A DNA stretch of 64,000 bases from Paragordius varius (Eukaryota > Animalia > Nematomorpha): positions 9,052,001-9,116,000 of the forward strand of contig OZ176050.1 of NCBI GenBank assembly GCA_964247055.1. The letters are read 5' to 3'. Within the stretch, counting starts at the first letter, position 1, and each line of letters starts with the position of its first letter. The position numbers were made by a program, and so were the translations under genes. This document shows, one piece after another, positions 1 through 16,700 of this stretch. The notes beneath the pieces are model-generated. The model saw only the letters and a list, made by a program, of their open reading frames with translations. It had not been told where the DNA came from and did not search any database.

Positions 1-698
1 GGCAAGAAATAGTAGTAAGATAAAGAAGTTATCTTACAATAATTATATTAGATTTACCTGCTCTGAAAGGGCCGTGATTTTATAAGCCAGTCTTTCAACT
101 GAATATTTATAATATCCTTAAATACAATAACTGAAGATATATTTTATCAAAAATCTGCAATATGACATCATATAAATTTTTTCCATCATCATGTAAAACC
201 ATTATAAATGGTAATATGAGGAGTACTATCAAGTATTGTTATTAATTTATATTTTTACTCTGCTGAAACTTTTGGGACTACTGCTCTGCCACATGTTAAT
301 CCTCTGGGTGGGAATAATCGGTAATATATCCTTATCAATTTCTATGTAATAATTTTTACGTTTCGTTTAATATTTTTAGCTCTGTTGAAACTTTTGGGAC
401 TACTGCTCTGCCACATATTCCATATACAATTACCGGTAGAGAGCGCGGGTATTATATTGTTTATTTTCAGATATAATATTTATATATGTGTGTGATTTTG
501 TTTTATATCAAAATAGCAAGGACAGGGCAATTATAATGTCGTGCGCCCCATAATAAGCTTTTTTAGGATCACGGATTTAATGATTTTTATTTTTCGTTGC
601 AAAAAGTCTGTACCATATATTTCCGATTTTTATATAAATATGGGACATTATTATATGTAATAGTTGACAAACAATATAATTAGTTTTAAAATATATAT

Positions 699-1938
699 AT
701 GACAAAATTTTTTGGTGTTCCAAATTGGTCCTTAAATCTCAAGGCCAGAGATGTCCGACTTAAATGCTTGCAAGGGCCGCATGTTGGTTGCTGCTTAAGA
801 AATGTGAAATACATGTTTTATTTTATGCATAAAATGTATGTTAATATACTTTTAAGGGGTAACCGAAAACGCAAAATAAGAAATCGCCGAACAATTCCCA
901 CATATGATATGCCGATATTATTACGCAATACAACAAATGCATTAGATTTTATTACTAATGAAATATACCCACCTGGAACAAGAAAATTGCGCAACGGATC
1001 ACTGTCCTATAGAGAGCGGGTGGAGATATATATAAGATATCTATCGGATCCTGGCTACCAATCAGGAGTGGCCCAGGACTACGTTATAGAACGTAGTTCT
1101 TTGACCAAAATAGTGCAGGAAGTTGCTCCACTGTGTTCTAACTTGCGCATAAAGTGGATGCAACTTCCCCAGGATCGAAATGACATGGAGAGAGCTAGAA
1201 ATCTTTGGCTATCCCGATTCAAGCTACCTTATATTGTGGGTGCAATTGATTGCACTCATATTGAAATAAAACAGCCTACACAATTTCTCCAATATTATAT
1301 TAATCTTAAAGGATATTTTTCATTGAATGTCCAAGTCACTGTTGACGCCGAAAAATTTACCTCCATAGAGGTTAATTCACCGGGAGGCATACATGGTGCC
1401 AGGATCTATAGCAACTCTCTTATCAGATCGATCCTGGAAGATATGGCAGAGTTGGTAGTTTGTTAGGTGATAGTGTGACAAAAAACCATTATCACACTAT
1501 TAAAGACACCCACAGCAGCGCACGAGATAAGGTATAATTATCTCCAGAGCAAAGAACGCATGTTGGTAGAGCGTGTGCTCGGTCAATGGAAGAGGGTATT
1601 TCCCATCTTAGGCAATAAGATCCGTGTCAAGACGGAAATCGTCACTGATTTGATACAATCATGTGGGGTATAGTTCAATATAGGTATATTTTATATTTAA
1701 TATGCGAATTTTACAGCATTTATATATCTATCTATAAGAAATATGTTCATTTTAGTTTGTACTCCATGAAATTATTTTTAATATTATAGGGAAGTACCTA
1801 AAAGCTATCGGTAATATTGAGGAGAACGAATTTGTAGGCCCATCAGACGATGAGACGGAGCCAATATCCAGTAGTCGGCAGGCAGGAATCGATAGAAGGA
1901 ATGATATTATGCTATATATTATTATTAATAATTTATGA
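699..1938 (+). pseudogene. Harbinger (DDE_Tnp_4/HARBI1-like) transposase of copy A, frameshifted
   Basis: Motifs GAIDCTHI, YINLKGYFSLNVQ, PGGIHGARI, and downstream ERMLVERVLGQWKRVFPIL. A small deletion relative to B near 1460-1480 breaks the LLGDSGY motif and the frame. The last exon ends in TGA at 1936-1938. The true start is uncertain. Confidence 0.85.
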
Positions 1939-1984
1939 TTTACTATATTTATATAAATGCCAAATATATATTTATAACATATAT

Positions 1985-2762
1985 TTATCTTGTAAAATAT
2001 TTAACATTTTAAGGTATGATAAAATCTCTTTAAAATAATCCTTGCAATTCGTGTGAGATTCTCTCGGCTCACATACCACACAGGAGCCCGTTACATCTAT
2101 AATAAATTATAAATATAATTATAATATTTTTGCCAATATTACTTAAAACAGATTCATCAGGTATATTGGGCTTTCAGGATTGTACATCCTGGTAGCAAAT
2201 AGTGATAATAAATTACAAAAAAAAATTTTTTAATAAAAATCCATATATTATATTTGAAATTTCTATAATATATATATATATACTGGGATAGGTGTGCACA
2301 GGACCTGGATATTGAGAATTAAATGTATTGTCATGTATTGAAATAAAATTATCTATAAAAGTAAAAATGAAATATACACCGGTGAATACGGAATCCGTGG
2401 CTGTATGAGTTATTTCTGAATTTATATATTATGAATACTTTTTCTAACGGCAGATTCTCGAACCCCCGGAAGACACCAGTTTTTGGGAGATTTACGGTAG
2501 TGAAGCAAATTACTCAGAACCATTTCATGCCTGAGCAATTTGGGGGACGCCCTATTACCCGTCCTCCGGGCCATATCATTTTTTCTTTTGATACAAGCCC
2601 GAATATTGTCGTACATTTTTCGAGCACTTCTCTCGCATATATCATCATATCCCAAATTTCTCATTTCGTTAGCTAACGACTTGAAGGCCTTAAGCCTTTC
2701 TCCGTTAGTAAATTTATTAACGGTATTCTGAAATATACACGGATAGCTATAAATAAAACTTA
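1985..2762 (-). pseudogene. Myb/SANT-like DNA-binding protein of Harbinger copy A, split by the insertion of B (first exon at ~6305-6358)
   Basis: YPCIFQNTVNKFTNGERLKAFKSLANEM...RRTGN matches the B gene. Its first exon (MENTFSSARDLFVGLIK) lies on the far side of B, with ATG at 6356-6358 on the minus strand. Confidence 0.85.
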
Positions 2763-2879
2763 GGCCCATGTGAATGAGCCTCTTTTCAAGCTCATTCACA
2801 TGGATTATGGATTATGAAATAACATATGTTTGAGGGATGTGATTGAGTTTTTGAGGCGGGATTTTTGAAAAATCATATA

Positions 2880-3791
2880 ATGGATAATACTTCCTCTTCT
2901 GCACGCGATTTATTAGTCGGTCCCATTAAAGAGTTAAGTTTTATTTATTTATAGCTATCCGTGTATATTTCAGAATACCGTTAATAAATTTACTAACGGA
3001 GAAAGGCTTAAGGCCTTCAAGTCGTTAGCTAACGAAATGAGAAATTTGGGATATGATGATATATGCGAGAGAAGTGCTCGAAAAATGTACGACAATATTC
3101 GGGCTTGTATCAAAAGAAAAAATGATATGGCCCGGAGGACGGGTAATAGGGCGTCCCCCAAATTGCTCAGGCATGAAATGGTTCTGAGCAATTTGCTTCA
3201 CTACCATAAATCTCCCAAAAACTGGTGTCTTCCGGGGGTTCGAGAATCTGCCGTTAGAAAAAGTATTCATAATATATAAATTCAGAAATAACTCATACAG
3301 CCACGGATTCCGTATTCACCGGCGCCAGTATATTTCATTTTTACTTTTATAGATAATTTTATTTCAATCATGAAAAATCTTTTAAATCTCAATATTTAGG
3401 TCCAGTAAACACCGGTGCCAGTATATTTCATTTTTAATTATATAGATAATTTTATTTCAATAGATGACAATTCTTTTAATCAATATCCAATAAACACCGA
3501 TGCCACTATATTACATTTTTAATTTTATAGTAAATTTTATTTCAAATCATGAAAAATCTTTTAAATCTCAATATTTAGGTCCAGTAAACACCGGTGCCAG
3601 TCCTGAAAGCCCAATATACCCAAACGAATCTATTTTAAGTAATATTGGCAAAAATATTATAATTATTATATTTATAATTAATTATAGATGTAACGGGGTC
3701 CTGTGCGAGAGCCGAGAGAATCTCACACAAATTGCTTTTTCAAAGAGATTCTATCATACCTCAAAATGATTTTAAATATTTTACAAGATAA
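2880..3791 (+). CDS. Myb/SANT-like (MADF/Myb_DNA-bind_5 type) accessory protein of Harbinger copy B, apparently intact when spliced
   Basis: Exons 2880-2932, 2955-3262, 3286-3327, 3400-3420, a fifth exon from 3579 and a last exon ending TAA at 3791 give an open frame: MDNTSSSARDLLVGPIKDYPCIFQN...RKMYDNIRACIKRKNDMARRTGN. GT-AG introns include 22 nt (2933-2954) and 23 nt (3263-3285). Confidence 0.75.
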
Positions 3792-3841
3792 ACACATGTT
3801 ATAAATATATTAAATTAGCATTTATATAATAAATATAGTAA

Positions 3842-5091
3842 TCATAAATTATTAATAATAATATATCGCATAATATCATTCCTTCTATCGATTCCTGCCT
3901 GCCGACTATGGATATTGGCCCCGTCTCATCGTCTGATGGGCCTACAAATTCGTTCTCTTCAATATGACCGATGGCTTTTAGGTACTTTCGTATAATAGTA
4001 AAAATAATTTGATATGGAGCACAAACTAAAATGCACATATTTCTTATCGATATATGTAAAAATGCTGTAAAATGCGCATATCAAATATAAAACATACCTA
4101 TATTGAACAATACCCCACATGATTGTATCAAGTCAGGTACCATTTCCGTCTTGACACGGATCTTGTTGCCTAGGATGGGGAATACCCTCTTCCATTGACC
4201 GAGCACACGCTCTACCAACATGCGTTCTTTGCTGTGGATATAATTATAACGTATTTCATGCCCTGCTGTGGGTGTCTTTATTGGTGTGATTATGGTTTTT
4301 TGTATACCATAACCACTATCACCCAACAGACTTCCATACTCTGCCACATCTTCCAGGATCGATCTGACAGGAGAGTTGCTATAGATCCTGGCATCATGCA
4401 TGCCGCCCGGTGAATTCCCCTCTATAGAGGTAAATTTTTAGGCGTCAACAGTGACCTGGACGTTAAGCGAAAAGTATCCTTTACGATTTATAAAATCTTG
4501 GGCAAATTGTGTAGGCTGATTTATTTCTATATAAGTGCAATCAATTGCACCCACAATATAAGGTAGCCTGAATGATAGCCAAAGATTTCTAGCTCTCTCC
4601 ATGTCATTTCGATCCTGGGGAAGTTGCATCCACTTTATGCGCAAGTTAGAACACAGCGGAGCAACTTCCTGCACTATTTTGGTCAAAGAACTAGGTTCTA
4701 TAACGTAGTCCTGGGCCACTCCTGATTGGTAGCCAGGATCCGATAGATATCTTATATATATCTCCACCCGCTCTCTATAGGACAGTGATCCGTTGCGCAA
4801 TTTTCTTGTTCCAGGTGGGTATATTTCATTAGTAATAAAATCTAAGGCATTTGTTGTATTGCGTAATAATATCGGCATATCATATGTGTGAATTGTTCGG
4901 CGATTTCTTATTTTGCGTTTTCGGTTACCCCTTAAAAGTATATTAACATACATTATGTATAAAATAAAATGAAACATGTATTTCACATTTCTTAAGCAGC
5001 AACCAACATGCGGCCCTTGCAAACATTTAAGTCGAACATTTCTGGCCTTGAGATATAAGGACTAATTTGGAACACCAAAAAATTTTGTCAT
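3842..5091 (-). pseudogene. Harbinger transposase of copy B with premature stop
   Basis: GAIDCTYI, FINRKGYFSLNVQ, MHDARI, LLGDSGYG, YNYIHSKERMLVERVLGQWKRVFPIL. An in-frame TAA at 4438-4440 separates ORFs 4438-5022 and 4081-4401 (copy A has GAA there). Confidence 0.88.
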
Positions 5092-5124
5092 ATATATATT
5101 TTAAAACTATTTATATTGTTTGTC

Positions 5125-5356
5125 GTATATATTAAGGTGTTACAACTAGGGTTGTGCATTTGACTGCTTTCTTCAAAAGTCCGGTCAGACCATGGTTATG
5201 ACAACTTTTTAATTTATTTTTATCAAAACAATAGAAAAATTTAATTAGATTATATTATATATATATAAATATTTAATTATATATTTAACGGATATATTAA
5301 AAAATAAAATCCTACTATCTCATCCAAAAAAATTTAATGGTCACCAAAACCCTATC
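5125..5356. mobile_element. ~230-bp insertion in copy B only, MITE-like
   Basis: Absent from the matching position of copy A (GTTTGTC|AACTATT is contiguous there). Short inverted ends TAGGGTT (5147-5153) / AACCCTA (5348-5354). No clean TSD seen. Confidence 0.55.
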
Positions 5357-6373
5357 AACTATTACATATAATTATGTCCCATATTTATATAAAAATCGGA
5401 AATATATGGTACAGACTTTTCGCAACGAAAAATAAAAATCATTAAATCCGTGATCCTAAAAAAGCTTATTATGGGGCGCACGACATTATAATTGCCCTGT
5501 CCTTGCTATTTTGATATAAAACAAAATCACACACAATATATAAATATTATATCTGAAAATAAACAATATAATACCCGCGCTCTCTACCGGTAATTGTATA
5601 TGGAATATGTGGCAGAGCAGTAGTCCCAAAAGTTTCAACAGAGCTAAAAATATTAAACGAAACGTAAAAATTATTACATAGAAATTGATAAGGATATATT
5701 ACCGATTATTCCCACCCAGAGGATTAACATGTGGCAGAGCAGTAGTCCCAAAAGTTTCAGCAGAGTAAAAATATAAATTAATAACAATACTTGATAGTAC
5801 TCCTCATATTACCATTTATAATGGTTTTACATGATGATGGAAAAAATTTATATGATGTCATATTGCAGATTTTTGATAAAATATCTTCAGTTATTGTATT
5901 CAAGGATATTATAAATATTCAGTTGAAAGACTGGCTTAAAAATCACGCCCCTTTCAGGTAAATCCAATATAATTATAGTAAGATAACTTCTTTATCTTAC
6001 CACTAATTCTTGCCTAAATATATAAAAATATAGCACTAAAACATTATTACCTTTCGTAAGCATTTGCCCGAAAAATATTTTTTAATCCATGTCCAAAATT
6101 TCCAAAACCTACCATATACATATATTAAATATACTTTATTTAGGCTAATACAGTTTGCAGATTCCAAAAATTCTTCCTAGTTCTCGAGACGGCTTTTGTA
6201 ACAACCTTAATCCTGAAAAACCAGGATTAAAAATTCCTCCATCTCAACAGGATAAGGAAGGCTCATTCACCACCTGCTCAACTGGCTCATTCACATGGGC
6301 CTTAACTTTTTATGAGACCGACAAATAAATCGCGTGCAGAAGAGAAAGTATTTTCCATCATATGATTTTTCAA

Positions 6374-7845
6374 GCAAGTAAACAAGTAAAGGGTGTAGCG
6401 TCGGAAGATCGTCGGCCACCTGCCGTCAAGGCAATCCCTACCCACCCGTAATGCATTGAGCTTCAGAGCGGGGAAACACATCGGAGGTTGGGTTTGACGT
6501 TAGTATCTACATACATAATTAAAAGCCTTCATGTTAGTTGTGTTAATGGGAGTTAGTATAGTTAATAAGCTATATATATATATACATATATAGATATATT
6601 AAAAGAAATGTTAATTTCGCCTTGTTAAGTAGGTAAAAGCAATATTTGAGTTTAAATAACCGTACAAACAGGGTTTGATTACTCCAGAAAGTAATGTCAA
6701 AGGTCTATGTCGGATCAAATGTAGAGTTAATTTTAAGCTCTTATCTTTGGTGTGGAAGGGGGTCTTCTTTTGCTTCTAAATGAGTGTGGCCTTTAGGTAA
6801 ACCAATTTTGGAGATATTAGACATTACAAGCGTCAACGTTACCCCTTCGTGCGACCATGTTTCAGTTGTACCTTCAAATGGGACGCTAACCCGGGATAAG
6901 TGGTCGTTGAGCTTGCTCTGAGCTAAGTCTCAAACTCCGACCAACAGAGATGTCGGAGATTGGTAACCAGCCCTGCTCAAATATCAGCGGCTTTAACATT
7001 GCTTCCCAGGATGTCGTCCCACAAGGATTGGCTAATAGTCTAATCAGAGTCGCGTCTTGCATGCTTTATTTATACATTCAGTGGTACATTTTGTTCGTGG
7101 GATATCTGTGGGAAGCAGTCTATATTCTTAACTAACTGTATAGATGTTTACCATTAACAGATTTTGTTGTAAATATTACATCAATACCAACTGATTTTAA
7201 GAGAGCGTTGTAAAATAAAAATTTATACCTTAATTGCATCAATACTAACTGACATTAACAGAGCGTTGTAAATTAAAATTTATACCTTAATTACATCAAT
7301 ACTAACTGACATTAACAGATTGTAAAATAAAAATTTATACCTAAATACATCAATACTAACTGACATTAACAGAGCGTTGTAAAATAAAATTTATACCTTA
7401 ATTACATCAATACTAACTGACATTAACAGAGCGTTGTAAAATAAAATTTATACCTTATCCAGCAGTGGGAATTAACCTTAAAATACTACCGACTTAGCAA
7501 TAGTCCCATTTAATCTGGAGCAAAGTATCCGGTTCAAATAAAAATTGAATGGGAATCAGCCCTCAAATATCAGCGGTTCCGATGTTATCGTCATATAGCA
7601 GGGAAGTTTTGCGTTGGTTTCCAACGGGATAGGATTAGTAACTGGTGCGTTTCCTCGTTGTCAGGGGCTTAAAAGTGATCGAGGTTATCGGGGTATAATC
7701 GTAATCGCGTTCATCAGCACAGCCTCAAGAGCTCAGTTGGCCACAGTTATTGAAGTTTTTTCGGTAAGTTTTAAAGATCGGGGTCATTAGGAATTTACAT
7801 TCATTGTTCGATTCTAGCCTGGAGAGGATGTTGCGTCAGCCGGTC
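6374..7845. mobile_element. 1472-bp non-coding retroposon-like insertion with a 13-bp target-site duplication
   Basis: TATGATTTTTCAA is duplicated at 6361-6373 and 7846-7858, and the host Harbinger sequence resumes on each side. CAAGTAAA is doubled at the left end; no TIR, LTR or long ORF was seen. Confidence 0.75.
7152..7458. repeat. Tandem repeat, ~57-bp unit, ~5 copies, inside the 1.47-kb insertion
   Basis: The unit ACATCAATACTAACTGACATTAACAGAGCGTTGTAAAATAAAATTTATACCTTAATT is repeated, with one copy shortened. Confidence 0.92.
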
Positions 7846-9659
7846 TATGATTTTTCAAAAATCCCGCCTCAAAAACTCGATCACCTCCTAAGCATATGTT
7901 TTCTCATAATCCATCCCATGTGAATGAGCTTGAAAATAGGGTCATTCACATGGGCCTTAATTGGTAAATTTTTTTTATTATTGTAGAAAAATGAAAATGC
8001 CAAAGAGAAGAGAAATTAAGGAAATTGATTATTTTTTTAAAACAATGGGGCAGTTGGATTGATATGCAAAAAATCAAGTGTCTTATAATTTGCTTCAGTA
8101 CGATGCGAAACATTAAAATAAAGGCAAAACATAATTGATTTTTGCAAAAATTAGAGTATCAATAAAATATTTTTAAACAACCAGGAAAAGCTGAATAAAC
8201 CAAAATCTCCTTTAATTTTTAGAAATAGATTGCAGAAAACAATAAACCCTATATAGGTTTATCAAAAATGTATGGTTGCCATTCAAGAAATTTGCCCTAT
8301 AATATTAAAAAATTTTATAATTCTATTGTGTCATACCACAGGGTAATATTGAAAATGGCCAATATTGTAAAATTAAAAAAAAAATTCTTTCAGATTTGAA
8401 TATTTGAGCGCTGGATGAGCGCATGATATAGCAAGTACTCGTTAATTAATTTTTGCTTAACACTCCTTACCGTGAAAAAGTTACAGCTATTGAGTCTAAT
8501 TTAATAATATGCTTTCTTTAATCTTTTTGGCGCATTAGACAAATGTAAAAAAATTCTTATCTCAAACTTTTTTGCCGCCTTTTTTTCCATAAATTTTTTA
8601 AATTTGCTAATGCAAGACGCAAATAAATGGTTATGGTTAAAAATCTAACTAATTAACTTAAAACAGGCTACATTTTACTAGCAAAAATTTTATATATTTT
8701 GATTTAAATATCAGCTGTTCGTTTCAATCATGTTTTGGAGCTGATTATACTTTCTAAACTTGATCAAATTTTTACTTGAATATCAAGAATAAATTCTGTT
8801 AATAAATTTAAGGCTTATTTTGTGGAATCCGCCACTGCGCGAATGGCTACATTCACAAGCATTGGGTCCACAACCCCATACCGTGATTCGAGCAAAAATT
8901 AAATATTAACCAATTAAAAATAGACCAATTTTTAATTTTTTACCGCAAAAGGAATCATTTATTTTTTTACAAATCAGAGTAATTTAAACAAAGGGTTTAT
9001 TTTAAATTTTAAAATATTTTTTTATGGTTTAACAAAAGTAAAATATAAATATTAAAAATATCTTTTTAATATGAAAAAACAATACAAAAGTCAGCGCACC
9101 AGGCGCAGTTTTTTTTAACTGAGAGCCATTACAGTATTGCGAAAAACAGCCCATCTGGTCACATTGTATCCAAGTGTTAATTTTTTGTTTTATAGAGCTA
9201 AATTTTATGATTGTTTTCAAGGTTCTAGCCTTCCTAAATTTAATAAAATTTAAACATAACCTTAAACTCGTTTTATCGACATTTTAACGGTCATAAAAGT
9301 ATTTTATAAGCTGTTACAGCTTCTAACTTTCATCAGTTTAATAAAAAAGTATCTAATATAGGTTCCATTAAAAAAATATCTTTTAAATATAAATAACATT
9401 GTAAAAAAATGTATATCTCACAATTTCTTGATCGATTAAAAAAAATCTAGTGAGCTACCCATTCATAAAATAAAAAAATTCAATTAACTGTTCACTATCG
9501 TATATTTTAATATGATTAATTAGGTTAATGCGTAAATGGTATGTTTTTAATATCAAAAAACTGGAATGTAAAACAAACTATTGTCGTTCAATAAGCATTT
9601 TATGGCCTTTGGTTTTATTATATTTTACTACCTGCCAAATAAATGAGATCATAATAATA

Positions 9660-10730: not shown

Positions 10731-13700
10731 ATGGGACGTGCTCAATTCGAATATGATCAAAGTGGAGGAACATCATATTATTTTATTACAACATTCGTTT
10801 TATTCACCCTAATTCCAGCCACATATTATTTTTGGCCCAGGAAAAAACGTGAAAGTATAATATATTTCATAGATATTTAGGTAAGAAATCAGAGGAAGAT
10901 TGCCATTGTGATGGATGCATTATCAAAACAAAAAACTTAAATAAGATTAGTCCACAAAGCAATTTAAAGAATACTTTGATGTAAATTAAAATTTAATATA
11001 TATGGTAGAAAATTTCTTATTATCCTTGTTTGGATTTTATTTTTGTATATCGCATATACATCGGCTAAAATTGAAAGAAACTATGCGGAATACGATCCCT
11101 ATGCTATATTAGAATTGGATAAGGTAATGATTTCTAAAACCCTATTAAATTACACTATATAGTATTTTAGAGGACAATATTTTTAAACTCTCAATATTAT
11201 TTATATTCTCAACCTTATTTTTGAATTATAAACTATTTTAAATATATATATATTAGGGTGCCTCAACATCAGAAATCAAAAAGAAATACCGGCAGTTAAG
11301 TGCGAAATTCCATCCCGATGTCAAAGAAACTGGTGATCATGATAAATTTATGAAAATAGCAAAAGCTTATGCGGCGTACGTAGATTTATTTTATAAAATC
11401 AATTAATAGTAATATACAGAATGCATTGTAATGGTTGCTTATTTCACACTATAGTTGGGCAATCTGCACCAGTAGTGAATGGAAAAAAGAAAGGAAATAT
11501 TTATTCAACGTTTTGTTGTTTTTTCTATACGCTACTGTGTTGCAAATTGCCCAACTAAAGTGTGAAATAACCATCCAATAAAATGCATACTGTATGTTTT
11601 AATTATATTTTCCAATTTTTTTAGTTTAACGGACGAAGCATCCAGAAAAAATTGGGAAGAGTTTGGAAATCCGGATGGACCCACTGGTAAATTTGTTTAC
11701 TTAATTTACACAAAATTTGATTAAATTTATTTAATAAAGCTCTTGGTAAATTTATTAAATTATAAATTATTTTAAAATATTTGTAAATATTTTTTCCCAT
11801 TACTTTAGCTACAACATTTGGTATTGCTTTACCAGCGTGGATTGTTGAAAAAGGGAATTCGATATGGGTAATATATTTTTAATTTTTTTACCTTATTCAA
11901 AAAATGTATAATTGAATTGCCATTAAATTTTATCTGATACATTATTGACTATTGCGTTAATTTTTTTTAATGTTTAATACAGGTCTTATCCGCATACGTG
12001 CTCGTTTTTATGATCATTCTACCCGTTATTGTTGTAAGTTTAGCTTTTTGTCTATTGTTATATAAATAAACGGAATATAATATTATTATATTTAGTTTTT
12101 TAACCATTAAAATATATTGTTTTATGTTAGGGAACATGGTGGTACAAATCTATCAAATACAGCGGTGATAAAGTTCTAATTGATACAACGCAAATGTATA
12201 TGTACTTCTTTCATAAAACTCCAAATATGATGCTTAAAAGTAAACTAATACTTTTTTTGATATTTATTTTAAATCTACTCATGATTTGTCAATATAAGTT
12301 TTACTTTTCTTTACAGTTTGCATTAGAGTTATTATTGTTTAATATAATATCTTTTTTATGAGTTTGTAGTTTTTTTTTGCGGAGACTTAGTTGTAACTAA
12401 TTTACATAATGGGTTTTTATATTTTAATTACTCTTTTGATGCCATATTTTATTTAATATATATAAGGCGGTGTTTTGAACAAAAGTAACGGATCAATTTA
12501 AACCGCATATATTATTATTTGAAATAAGATTAAAGAATTTTTTATATTTAGGAGTTTTAATGATCCTTGCCGCATCATTTGAGTTTTGCAAATTTTATAA
12601 CACAGAAATCCATGAAAGGCCTAGTGATAATTTAGAATTACCTCAAGTACTCTTATATAAATGATTTTATAATCGATAATAACGATAAAATTAATTTATT
12701 TTAAAATTTTTGGGTCTAAACAATAATGTAAAAATGTTTTTATTATTGAAGTGTCGATTTGTGGATATTTCTGTGTATTTTCACCAGTTTGTTTGCATTG
12801 TTCGGGGAATCAGTTGATGTATGACTACTTGGTTTTTTCGATCAAATCATTCAATGTCTTTTCTGGAACCTTAGACTTTTCATGTCATCAGCTGGTATTT
12901 TAAGTTATTATTTTAGGACATGTGTCGAACAAACGTATGTCGGTTTCGATTTTATAAAGAATTTCAATGATTTATTTTATCCTTCCAATCGATTCGCGGC
13001 ATCTTTTTTCAACGCTACATTTCGAATGCAGCATATAACTTCACATTGTTCCTTCATTAATTTTCGAATAAATTAGGATCCGGTTTAGTTTATAAAATCA
13101 AACCCCTTCGAAATTTTTTAATCAGCCCATGTTTGACAATAAAACTTTCATAATCAGCTGATGGCAGGGAAAGTAGATAATAAGCGAAACGCGTCAGATT
13201 GATGATCGTGGAACTGATTCAACAACTGATTTCCCCACATCTAACCGCAACAACTGGTCGAAATACATTTACGAGATAAGCGGCAAATCGACATCCTTGT
13301 CTATAAAAACAATAATAATTTTAAACTTGCTTTGAATTATTGGAAAAAAATCTTGATAAATAAATTGATTTTGTCGCTACTACTGTAAATAAAATGATTA
13401 GATTCTTTATCGACCAATCTTTAATAACTGATTTTTCTTCATTTAGCTATTGAAAAGGCTTACAAATTTGAATGAAAAAAATAAGGAAAGACCGCTATCT
13501 GCTCCTTACAGTGTTAAAGCACGCATTTTGCTCCATGCTCATCTCACGCGTTTAGATTTACCTCCAAACACTTTGGAATTGGGTTTCAATATAAAACTAT
13601 ATTTTTTTACAATAGTAGCACTTGACTATAAATTTGCGTTATTTAATTATCTTTTATGTTATTTTAGACAAACAATATATTTTGAAAAAGTGCCCCCCTT

Positions 13701-16700
13701 TATTGAATGAAATGGTTAATTGTGTGGCACAATTAATGGCGCTTGCAAGTTCTGGACGAAGTATGATTGCACAAAATTTATAAAAAAATATTTCGATATT
13801 CACTAAATCCAACTCACTTTTATCCATTATTTTATTTTACTTTACAATATCGCAGTTCAACACAGTCCAAGGTTAGAAACGATGGAAAATGTTATAAAAA
13901 CATCTCAAATGATAATTCAGGGTTTATGGGAATTTAAAAGCCCTTTGTTACAATTGCCACACATTACGGAGGATACATTGAAACATTGTATTAATAAAAG
14001 GGTATTTTAACATATATTTATTACGGTAATAATTGAAATATGAAAGCGTAAAAAACCTAGAACCTTAATTCATAATATGACTCATATTGTGTTGCAAAAT
14101 AATTGATACAGATGTGGAACACACTCAAATATATATATATATTATATATATATCAAAATTATATTTATACTTAAGAAAATAAGGGTTAAATATCTTTAGT
14201 TTTACGTTTTGTATGTATGATATTAATTTTTACTGTAAATATAAAATTTAGTATTCAATAAGAACTATCAAAGATATGGTGACTATGAAAGAAAATGATC
14301 GAAAACACCTATTATCAAAGTTGATTGATAAAGAGTACAAAGATATATGTTTTGTTTTATCCCGTATGCCTCACGTGGATATTGACATTACATTTAAGGG
14401 TAAGATATTTAATGTTGGTATTTTAAAAGTTTATATTAAAAGATTTTTTTGCATAGGACATTTTATTTTTTATTTTAATTATAGAATGTGATATAATATA
14501 AAATGTGTGTGTTAGAAATTTACATCTATTTTTCTCTTGTCGCAATTTATAACAACAGAAGATAATCTTTAAAAAAATTAAATTTGATTTTTTTAATACA
14601 TATTTGGTTTTTACCGTACATTATATTGGTTATAAAAATGTGTACATTATGATCTTACCCAAATTATTAGATTAATATTAAATAAATTTATAAACTTTGT
14701 CAAAAATTCCGTGAGATAGCAGTCAAAGTAAACGAAAAAAAAAACAAAAAATCAAAAATTAACGTATAAAACATTATCGATTCCATAAATTATCTATCAC
14801 ACATTAAATAATTAGTTATTGATGATGAGGATACTCAAACTATAACAGCCAATAGTATTGTAACTGCGACAGTAACATTGACACGTAAATCAATGTCCGT
14901 TTTTATGAATGATTCTTCTCATACAGCAAATGGTATTGATGAACAACAGCAAACTATTACACATAATAATAATAATAATTTTACTGGTCAACAAAATAAA
15001 AAAATGGAAAATCGCCTATCAAACGGGTTTGTGGGAAATAAACCGATTACCGTCATAGAAAATGAGGTTTATAAGGGTTTCAATTACTTATAGGAGCGTA
15101 ATTCGGCCCAATATTTATTTATTTATGCCAATTTAATTAATGTTTTTTTATGTATATGGCTATAATTTTTCATCTTTTTGATTTGTTATAAATCAATGTT
15201 TGTGCCGATCGTTATTAGTTATATTTGAGAAACTACTCTCCATCATTGCATAAACACATTTTTATGAATTATATGTGCAATACGAGAACAGTCGTATTCT
15301 AGTTTTTCTATTAACAAAAATAAACACTTATAAAACTTATAATATGGCTGTTCCCTGAAGTAATATAAATATAAAATTTTAATTTTTATTATTTTTAGGC
15401 TGAAAATGATGATGAAGCCCTGGATTCTGATACACAAAAACCGACAAAACAACCCGTCTATAAACCAAAAAAGAAAAATTTCCCCAACAAAAAAAATAAA
15501 AAGAAAAATCAAAATATTAAAAATGTATAATTTATTGTATTTATAATTTACTAAAATAGTTAAAATTGTTGTTTTAAGATATTTTGTTAAAAATAAGTAT
15601 TAGATATTTAAATTTTATTTAATTAATTTGAATATATGTAAACAGAAACAATCAACCCAAGTCAAAGAAAAACTTGCCATATCTAACAAGGAAAACCCTA
15701 AAGAGGATGAAAAACCAAACGAAAATATAAAAGAGTAGGCAGTTTGTTGATTATAAAAATATCTATAAATTGAAAAAAAATGAATATTCGGACACACATT
15801 GTAATTTGCTTTATAACAATTAAGAAACTATGGTGATTTACAGTAAAAATTAATTTTATAAAGACCAAACGGTTTAAATCAAAAGACCACATAAATTTTG
15901 AATATTTCGATATGTCCTATATGATTATTGTAAGTGTATAATTGACTGTGGAACCAATTTACATTTTTTATTCACATTTTGCTACCCAGAAAGATAAGGT
16001 TTAATTAAAAAATGGATAAACTTCTAGTTTTGATTTTTCTTTATAATTTCAATCCAGGAAAAAAGAAACCACTAACAAAAATGAAAGTGACAGCGAATCC
16101 ATGTCGCAAACTAGCCCAAGTAGTACCGATAGTGAAGAATATTCCAGCCAAGACGAAGATGGTAAAGGTGGCGTCTTATAAATATTATATTTGACATTAT
16201 CTTAACAATCTCTTATCATTATTAATCCGATACAGGGGTGTCCAATACAAATGGCTTTGCGGGCTGCATTCGTATAAATTGGCACTAATTGTATATATAT
16301 TAGATTTTACACATATGACTGTAAAAAACAATATAAAAAAATTTTCTAGTTCGTCGCCAATTTAAAATTCGGAAAATTTGTTTAAATATAATCAATTTTA
16401 CCACGATATGTGAGCATATATTTTGTGTAAGATTTTTAAATTTTTTGCTAGCCGCATATAATGTCTCTGAGAGCCGCATGCGGCCCATACAATATGGATA
16501 AAACTTTGTTTTTTATTATATTTTTTCCGATAAAAAAAAAATCAGTAATTTAACCTAAATAACGTTTTATTTTAGACTCTCTATAAAAAATTATTATAAT
16601 TTAATTGTTTTTATTAGATATGATAAATAAAAATTTATTTATGTTTGTATATTAATATAATATAGAAGAATTCAAAAATATAGAGTAAATATCAGTCCAT

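Follow-up and report, generated by a model that had tools for sequence, protein, structure and literature searches.

At the left end of a 64,000-nucleotide stretch of the genome of the nematomorph Paragordius varius (hereafter the window; assembly GCA_964247055.1, contig OZ176050.1, or G000:C1, positions 9052001-9116000), a PIF/Harbinger transposon, copy B, has inserted, in the reverse direction, into an older element of the same family, copy A, giving an imperfect mirror repeat of ~6 kb. This identification is supported by the junctions, the orientation of the homologous blocks and the reconstruction of the interrupted copy, as detailed below, and the locus is most likely a relic of self-insertion that is inert today. 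The assembly measures 110.6 Mb in 44 contigs, and the G+C content of the window is mostly 23-31%, with no part of it having a human appearance. DNA to the left of the window was added to the analysis, and negative coordinates denote positions left of window position 1. The features of the locus are the following, where the C3 copy is the best other copy of the family, located on contig C3.

1-2759, plus strand: left part of copy A, which is the left arm and runs on for 271 bases beyond the window (blastn of B against the extended locus)
699-1466, plus strand: transposase remnant (DDE_Tnp_4) of copy A (Pfam E 5.5e-08, alignment and translation)
2422-2759, minus strand: Myb/SANT(MADF)-like exon 2 of copy A, separated from exon 1 by B (alignment across the junction)
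2760-2762, no strand: left TTA of the target-site duplication that B made (direct reading; the corresponding site of B and of the C3 copy has a single TTA)
2763-6301, plus strand: copy B, a complete PIF/Harbinger element of 3539 bp (whole-genome DNA search)
2763-2779, plus strand: left terminal inverted repeat of B, 17 bp (repeat finding and direct reading)
2880-3279, plus strand: Myb/SANT(MADF)-like gene of B, open frame (ATG at 2880, exon 1 at 2880-2932, exon 2 at 2955-3279, stop at 3279)
3308-3601, no strand: tandem repeat, three copies of 85-93 bp between the two genes of B (repeat finding)
3799-5022, minus strand: transposase pseudogene (DDE_Tnp_4) of B (Pfam, three-way alignment and translation)
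6285-6301, minus strand: right terminal inverted repeat of B, 17 bp, the exact reverse complement of 2763-2779 (direct reading)
6302-6304, no strand: right TTA of the target-site duplication that B made (direct reading)
6305-6373, plus strand: copy A resumes, holding the Myb-like exon 1 region (reverse homology to B 2865-2934, blastn 90.5%)
6374-7845, plus strand: 1472-bp non-autonomous retroposon-like repeat nested in A (genome search and 13-bp flanking duplication)
7859-7956, plus strand: right terminus of copy A (blastn and alignment)

An initial annotation, made from the letters of the window, had described copy B as an element with perfect 17-bp terminal inverted repeats and a TTA target-site duplication, and both exact ends and the two TTA triplets can indeed be read in the sequence. 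B is the only copy in the assembly that spans the full length (1-3539) with both ends, the whole-genome DNA search returning only the self-match. The same annotation had placed B inverted inside A, which agrees with the blastn result, since the homologous blocks of A match B in reverse orientation (B 182-680 against A 2757-2264, 94.8%; B 839-2362 against A 2179-666, 91.2%; B 2593-3507 against A 667 to -256, 96.8%), while the first 176 bases of B match 7956-7846 and 6373-6301. Copy A was rebuilt by excising B together with one TTA, and 6374-7845 together with one copy of the 13-bp duplication, and was then aligned with B and the C3 copy. Colinearity of the rebuilt A with B and with the C3 copy extends through both junctions, the B site as well as the retroposon site, and the proposal that A rejoins once B and one TTA are removed was thereby borne out. 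At the insertion site, both B and the C3 copy have a single TTA, and A has two, around B. This junction signature is that of one ordinary transposition into a resident copy, and not of a fold-back duplication.

Self-comparison of the locus by repeat finding gave a continuous series of inverted matches, from 1-60/5955-6014 inward to 2379-2757/2944-3322. The long inverted arms proposed earlier are present, around a spacer of ~175 bp, but they are imperfect and extend beyond the window edge, position -256 being paired with 6270 in the blastn alignment. The arms are ~3.2 kb long and 93.8% identical, and include the transposase remnants of both copies. Of 3172 aligned columns, 196 (6.2%) are mismatched between A and B, and there are 37 indel events as well; the largest of these is a deletion that removed from A the 232 bp corresponding to B 5125-5356. 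For copy A, an extent of 1-7956 had been given, of which the right end stands and the left end does not, as A starts 271 bases to the left of the window and spans -271 (G000:C1:9051729) to 7956, with TTA on both flanks. Its left terminal repeat is mostly deleted, leaving 7 bases of it, and its right inverted end at 7940-7956 has 1 mismatch compared to that of B, with A's own TTA duplication next to it at 7957-7959.

The differences between A and B are not evenly spread. Mismatches are strongly clustered, and the two longest stretches of perfect identity measure 478 bp (B 5422-5900) and 253 bp (2932-3188). When mismatch positions were shuffled, the longest run had a mean of 91 and a maximum of 229 over 20,000 trials, and runs of 478 and 253 were reached in 0 of these. 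When the C3 copy is included for comparison, A and B are the same in three stretches, at about 2930-3340, 4600-4850 and 5400-5900, and between about 3340 and 4600 it is B and the C3 copy that group together, with A as the outlier. Because identity is patchy, and the C3 copy, not A, is the nearer relative of B in the middle, A and B would derive from different sublineages, and their arms were probably later homogenized in part by gene conversion.

Both copies encode a DDE_Tnp_4 (PF13359) transposase of the PIF/Harbinger/IS5-like type, and neither gene is intact. In B, the domain was found on the minus strand at 4438-5022 and 4081-4401 (E 5.9e-16 and 2.9e-04, respectively), and a six-frame search recovered the full profile, 1-158, at 98.9 bits with one TAA. 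This in-frame TAA is located at 4438-4440, inside the DDE domain, and there is a 1-bp deletion near 3908. In the transposase of A, 1 bp has been deleted at 1453 and 8 bp at 1478, and more stop codons follow downstream. A putative GT-AG micro-intron of 33 nt lies in the B transposase at 4065-4097, and the version in the C3 copy is 28 nt. The Myb-like gene of B likewise contains a putative GT-AG micro-intron, of 22 nt (2933-2954), the equivalent of which is 18 nt in A, and the length changes in both putative micro-introns appear to be tolerated as intron indels. The TTA in B that is homologous to the insertion site in A, at 2934-2936, falls within this Myb-gene micro-intron. When searched exon by exon, B exon 2 alone matched MADF with E 0.021 and Myb_DNA-bind_4 with E 0.091, both below the Pfam cut-offs, and its nearest Atlas clusters are all Myb/SANT-like, with a top score of 0.90. 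The open reading frame (ORF) at 2422-2799, which covers exon 2 of A, gave a weak MADF match, also below the cut-off (E 0.0057), and exon 1 of A, at about 6310-6360, has a 1-bp deletion. A has fewer copies of the 85-93-bp tandem repeat, with gaps of 52, 13 and 7 bp in that region.

The ends and the target sites agree with the assignment to PIF/Harbinger, as a 3-bp target duplication, TTA, surrounds both A and B, and TTA/TAA is typical of this group. A whole-genome DNA search located the internal part of the family at three loci, namely here, on C3 at ~1.60 Mb and on C6 at ~3.42 Mb. Dozens of derivatives of ~1-1.5 kb match only B 1-278 and 3013-3539. These MITEs (miniature inverted-repeat transposable elements) carry the ends of B with 0-2 mismatches, and matching 3-bp flanks, mostly TTA or TAA, were found at about ten of the 16 MITE loci fetched. 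The family is a genuine PIF/Harbinger family with Tourist-like MITEs. Several of the fetched copies have common wider flanks beyond the 3-bp duplication, and these are part of a larger repeat, so that not all MITE copies are independent insertions. After the left terminal repeat of B, there is an inverted subterminal copy at 2790-2803, which produces a terminal hairpin motif, and MITE copies have the same end structure. At the Myb-gene end (2763-2803 and 7916-7956), this hairpin consists of the terminal repeat, a 10-nt loop and the inverted subterminal copy. At the transposase end, two subterminal copies in direct orientation take the place of the hairpin, and the same asymmetry is seen in the MITE derivatives.

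The C3 copy has two stop codons in the transposase frame, and stops or frameshifts are therefore present in 3 of the 3 coding copies of the family (A, B and C3). Given these lesions, no cognate transposase source was found, and searching the assembly, with alignment and translation of the coding copies, brought to light no family member with an intact transposase. Open DDE domains were detected by the six-frame Pfam search in Harbinger families other than this one. At the C3 (1597800-1603700) and C6 (3423000-3427700) loci, truncated copies that alternate in orientation form zig-zag arrays. The array junctions lack terminal repeats, and one seam falls on a subterminal repeat motif. These inverted junctions arose differently from the A/B nest.

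The history of the locus can be pictured as follows. A complete, related copy B hit the older copy A by ordinary cut-and-paste transposition, and would have landed at a TTA that overlaps the splice donor of the 22-nt micro-intron in A's Myb-like gene, ~170 bp from the end of A. It would have entered in the opposite orientation, duplicating the TTA, and the result would be two inverted arms of ~3.2 kb that lie ~175 bp apart, with the terminal segment of B as the spacer. Patches of the arms were then probably homogenized by arm-to-arm gene conversion. Disabling mutations followed in both copies, along with the loss of most of A's left end and the retroposon-like insertion in its right part. The inverted orientation may be the arrangement that survives, direct repeats being deleted by recombination.

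Several points weigh against this account. A chance landing in its own family is improbable for an element whose family, by rough estimate, makes up well under 0.1% of the genome, and therefore local hopping, or tethering to the resident copy, may have been involved. The mosaic identity of A and B could have another source than arm-to-arm conversion, as B could already have been recombinant before its insertion, derived from a recombinant master copy. Moreover, the presence of both arms on one molecule is taken from the assembly, and the inertness of the locus is an assumption. A more radical alternative is that there was no insertion at all, and that the mirror repeat came about by fold-back or mis-repair duplication, or is an assembly artefact. 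The C3 and C6 loci of the same family do have inverted junctions without terminal repeats, and arms that are 99-100% identical occur in other transposon families. However, the inner element here is exact at both of its ends and its TTA is duplicated, the interrupted copy A continues beyond B and, once rejoined, is colinear with the other copies, and the arms differ by 6% and 37 indels, a divergence that speaks against a fresh duplication and against an artefact of chimeric reads. A fold-back origin was rejected on the exact ends, the duplicated TTA and the colinear rebuilt A, and an assembly artefact on the clean ends, the target duplication and the divergence of the arms. Because of this junction anatomy the alternative is largely refuted, and we consider it scarcely credible.

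It had also been suggested that the locus places three or four compatible transposon ends together for alternative transposition. Three near-intact ends, at 2763, 6301 and 7956, do lie within 5.2 kb, but the fourth is missing, since the left end of A is deleted. That these ends are a live substrate, paired in alternative combinations to rearrange the locus, would fit the zig-zag rearrangements that this family shows on C3 and C6, and alternative transposition makes inverted duplications in maize (bioRxiv 10.1101/2020.01.07.897926). However, besides the loss of A's left end, no intact transposase of the family was found in the assembly, and one ordinary insertion suffices for the present structure, so that we regard a live substrate as very unlikely.

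Inverted transposon pairs are common in this genome. When neighboring DNA-transposase copies within 8 kb of each other were considered, 27 pairs were inverted and 1 was direct, distributed as follows.

Harbinger (DDE_Tnp_4): 12 inverted pairs (8 divergent, 4 convergent), 1 direct
Tc1-like (DDE_3): 13 inverted pairs, all divergent, 0 direct (among 150 of 200 candidates scored)
hAT: 1 inverted pair, 0 direct (among 150 of 400 candidates scored)
piggyBac: 1 inverted pair, 0 direct

The Harbinger count is based on a six-frame Pfam search in which all 108 of 108 DDE_Tnp_4 candidates were scored, corresponding to about 70 copies once exon pieces were merged, and the Tc1-like, hAT and piggyBac pairs were read by eye from match tables. 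A control for orientation bias with reverse transcriptases was uninformative, with 150 of 1712 candidates scored. The inverted loci that were sampled have arms of 300-4067 bp with 82-100% identity and inner gaps of 90-2000 bp. Large Tc1-like palindromes with an open transposase gene in each arm are located at C2:4376215-4378245, C9:1406528-1408558, C1:13995616-13997645 and C11:1383523-1387046. Tc1-like palindromes recur at several loci with identical spacing, and one of them has 4067-bp arms of 100% identity around a 260-bp spacer. Like A/B, the other palindromes, whether Tc1-like, hAT or other Harbingers, consist of mirror-image transposase copies with spacers, of 90-2000 bp. At the palindromes that were read at their junctions, those on C3 and C6, one arm is a mirror copy, rebuilt or duplicated, with no terminal repeats at the seam, whereas A/B is a clean two-element nest.

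The assembly yielded only two Piwi-domain genes (C2:3353388-3355921 and C1:12319268-12326618), both with an AGO-type C-terminal signature; the one on C1 matched AGO2 with 4.9e-29 versus 6e-11 for PIWI. One Dicer gene was identified by a Dicer_dimer match at C4:9128416-9128589. A search of the assembly gave no match to a PIWI-clade gene. Neither was there a match to an RNA-dependent RNA polymerase (RdRP), an absence that the search controls cannot validate, and Nematomorpha have been reported to be without RdRPs (PMC13650160).

Whether the mirror repeat has a function is a separate matter. The initial annotation had suggested that it could fold into a cruciform, which is unlikely, as instead of near-perfect arms around a very short spacer we found a spacer of ~175 bp and arms with 196 mismatches and 37 indels. 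A spacer of this length and imperfect arms disfavor cruciform extrusion. A kilobase-scale hairpin RNA acting as a self-silencing source of small RNAs had been proposed as well. In a folding computation, the inner 1179 nt, taken as RNA, formed one long stem of about 480 bp at -864 kcal/mol, so a hairpin RNA would be physically possible, and by this model certain if a transcript were to cross the spacer.

In maize, inverted transposon duplications trigger silencing by small interfering RNAs (siRNAs), for both MuDR (PMC3440606) and Ac (bioRxiv 10.1101/2020.01.07.897926), and A/B could be a silencer of the kind known there as Mu killer, in which read-through produces a hairpin, Dicer turns it into siRNAs that silence the Harbinger family in trans, and the locus is retained for this activity. 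The mechanism is thus an established one, the predicted stem and the perfectly complementary runs of 478 and 253 bp suit it, and so do the death of all coding copies of the family, the 27 inverted versus 1 direct transposase pairs, and the presence of one Dicer and two AGO-clade Argonautes with no match to a PIWI-clade gene or RdRP. However, no promoter or host-gene context was identified, Pfam and PDB sequence searches of flanking ORFs giving no match. The arms are decaying, with 6% mismatch and 37 indels, as neutral DNA would, and a family that is dead, with no intact target copy found in the assembly, has no need of a silencer. Recombinational loss of direct repeats, or the way in which palindromes form, can also explain why inverted pairs are in excess. 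A silencing role for this locus is therefore, in our judgment, unlikely. A broader version holds that inverted DNA-transposon pairs, including A/B, are the main source of transposon-directed small RNAs, and constitute a genome-wide hairpin immunity of the Mu killer type. This is suggested because two AGO-type Argonautes and one Dicer were found in the assembly and no PIWI-clade or RdRP gene, and, if true, it would explain the 27 inverted versus 1 direct pairs, although we think it unlikely. An inert relic of one self-insertion is the interpretation we prefer.

The 1472-bp insert in the right part of A lies between the two copies of a verified 13-bp direct duplication, at 6361-6373 and 7846-7858. 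A 57-bp tandem array is located within the insert, at 7175-7457. The repeat is present in the genome in ~20 near-full-length copies (query 2-1471) with 87-94% identity, plus truncated and split copies, and in the three copies where target duplications were read, these are 10-13 bp. It is non-coding, and its 5' end is sharp and the 3' tail varies among copies. It looks like a non-autonomous retroposon. Searches of 1-8200 found no tRNA genes and no Rfam families, and a tRNA origin of the insert is for that reason not established. Further to the right, the ORFs at 13450-13710 and 14276-14491 had been guessed to be Sec63/Brr2-like exons, a candidate that was dropped when Pfam and PDB sequence searches gave no match. 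To the left of the window, a minus-strand ORF at -2239 to -1997 resembles, by eye, the C-terminal part of a reverse transcriptase from a retrotransposon without long terminal repeats, and had no Pfam match at E 0.01.

Self-insertion and nested transposition are already known as events, and this locus adds a clean, well-resolved case. As a datable landing of a DNA transposon in its own kin, with signs of gene conversion, it is useful for teaching and annotation, and not surprising. Its wider value is that such a well-resolved case lies in a genome rich in transposon palindromes, in which machinery for PIWI-interacting RNAs and RdRPs was not detected by the assembly searches. If such loci feed Dicer, they would be, in an animal, the natural equivalent of what Mu killer is in maize.

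P-element self-insertions have been documented (PMC4744444), and nested PIF/Harbinger elements have been described in Medicago (PMC2213677). As in A/B, one element contains a second that is complete, with ends and target duplication of its own, and the first is restored when the second is taken out. What differs here is that the guest comes from the host's own family, that the case is from an animal, that the orientation is inverted, and that the mosaic identity of the two suggests later gene conversion. Mu killer (PMC3440606) shares with A/B a long inverted repeat over a transposase gene and a terminal region, with the potential for a multi-kb hairpin RNA. Mu killer, however, is a partial inverted duplication whose transcription comes from a neighboring gene, and for which siRNAs and heritable silencing have been demonstrated, whereas A/B is a nested insertion of two diverged copies, and the likeness is limited to the long inverted repeat, known here from sequence. 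The composite Ac/Ds insertions of maize (bioRxiv 10.1101/2020.01.07.897926) also combine several compatible ends at one locus with inverted sequences capable of forming double-stranded RNA. Those composites are fractured copies without full ends that are made during replication, whereas A/B has intact ends and a target duplication, and does not require alternative transposition.

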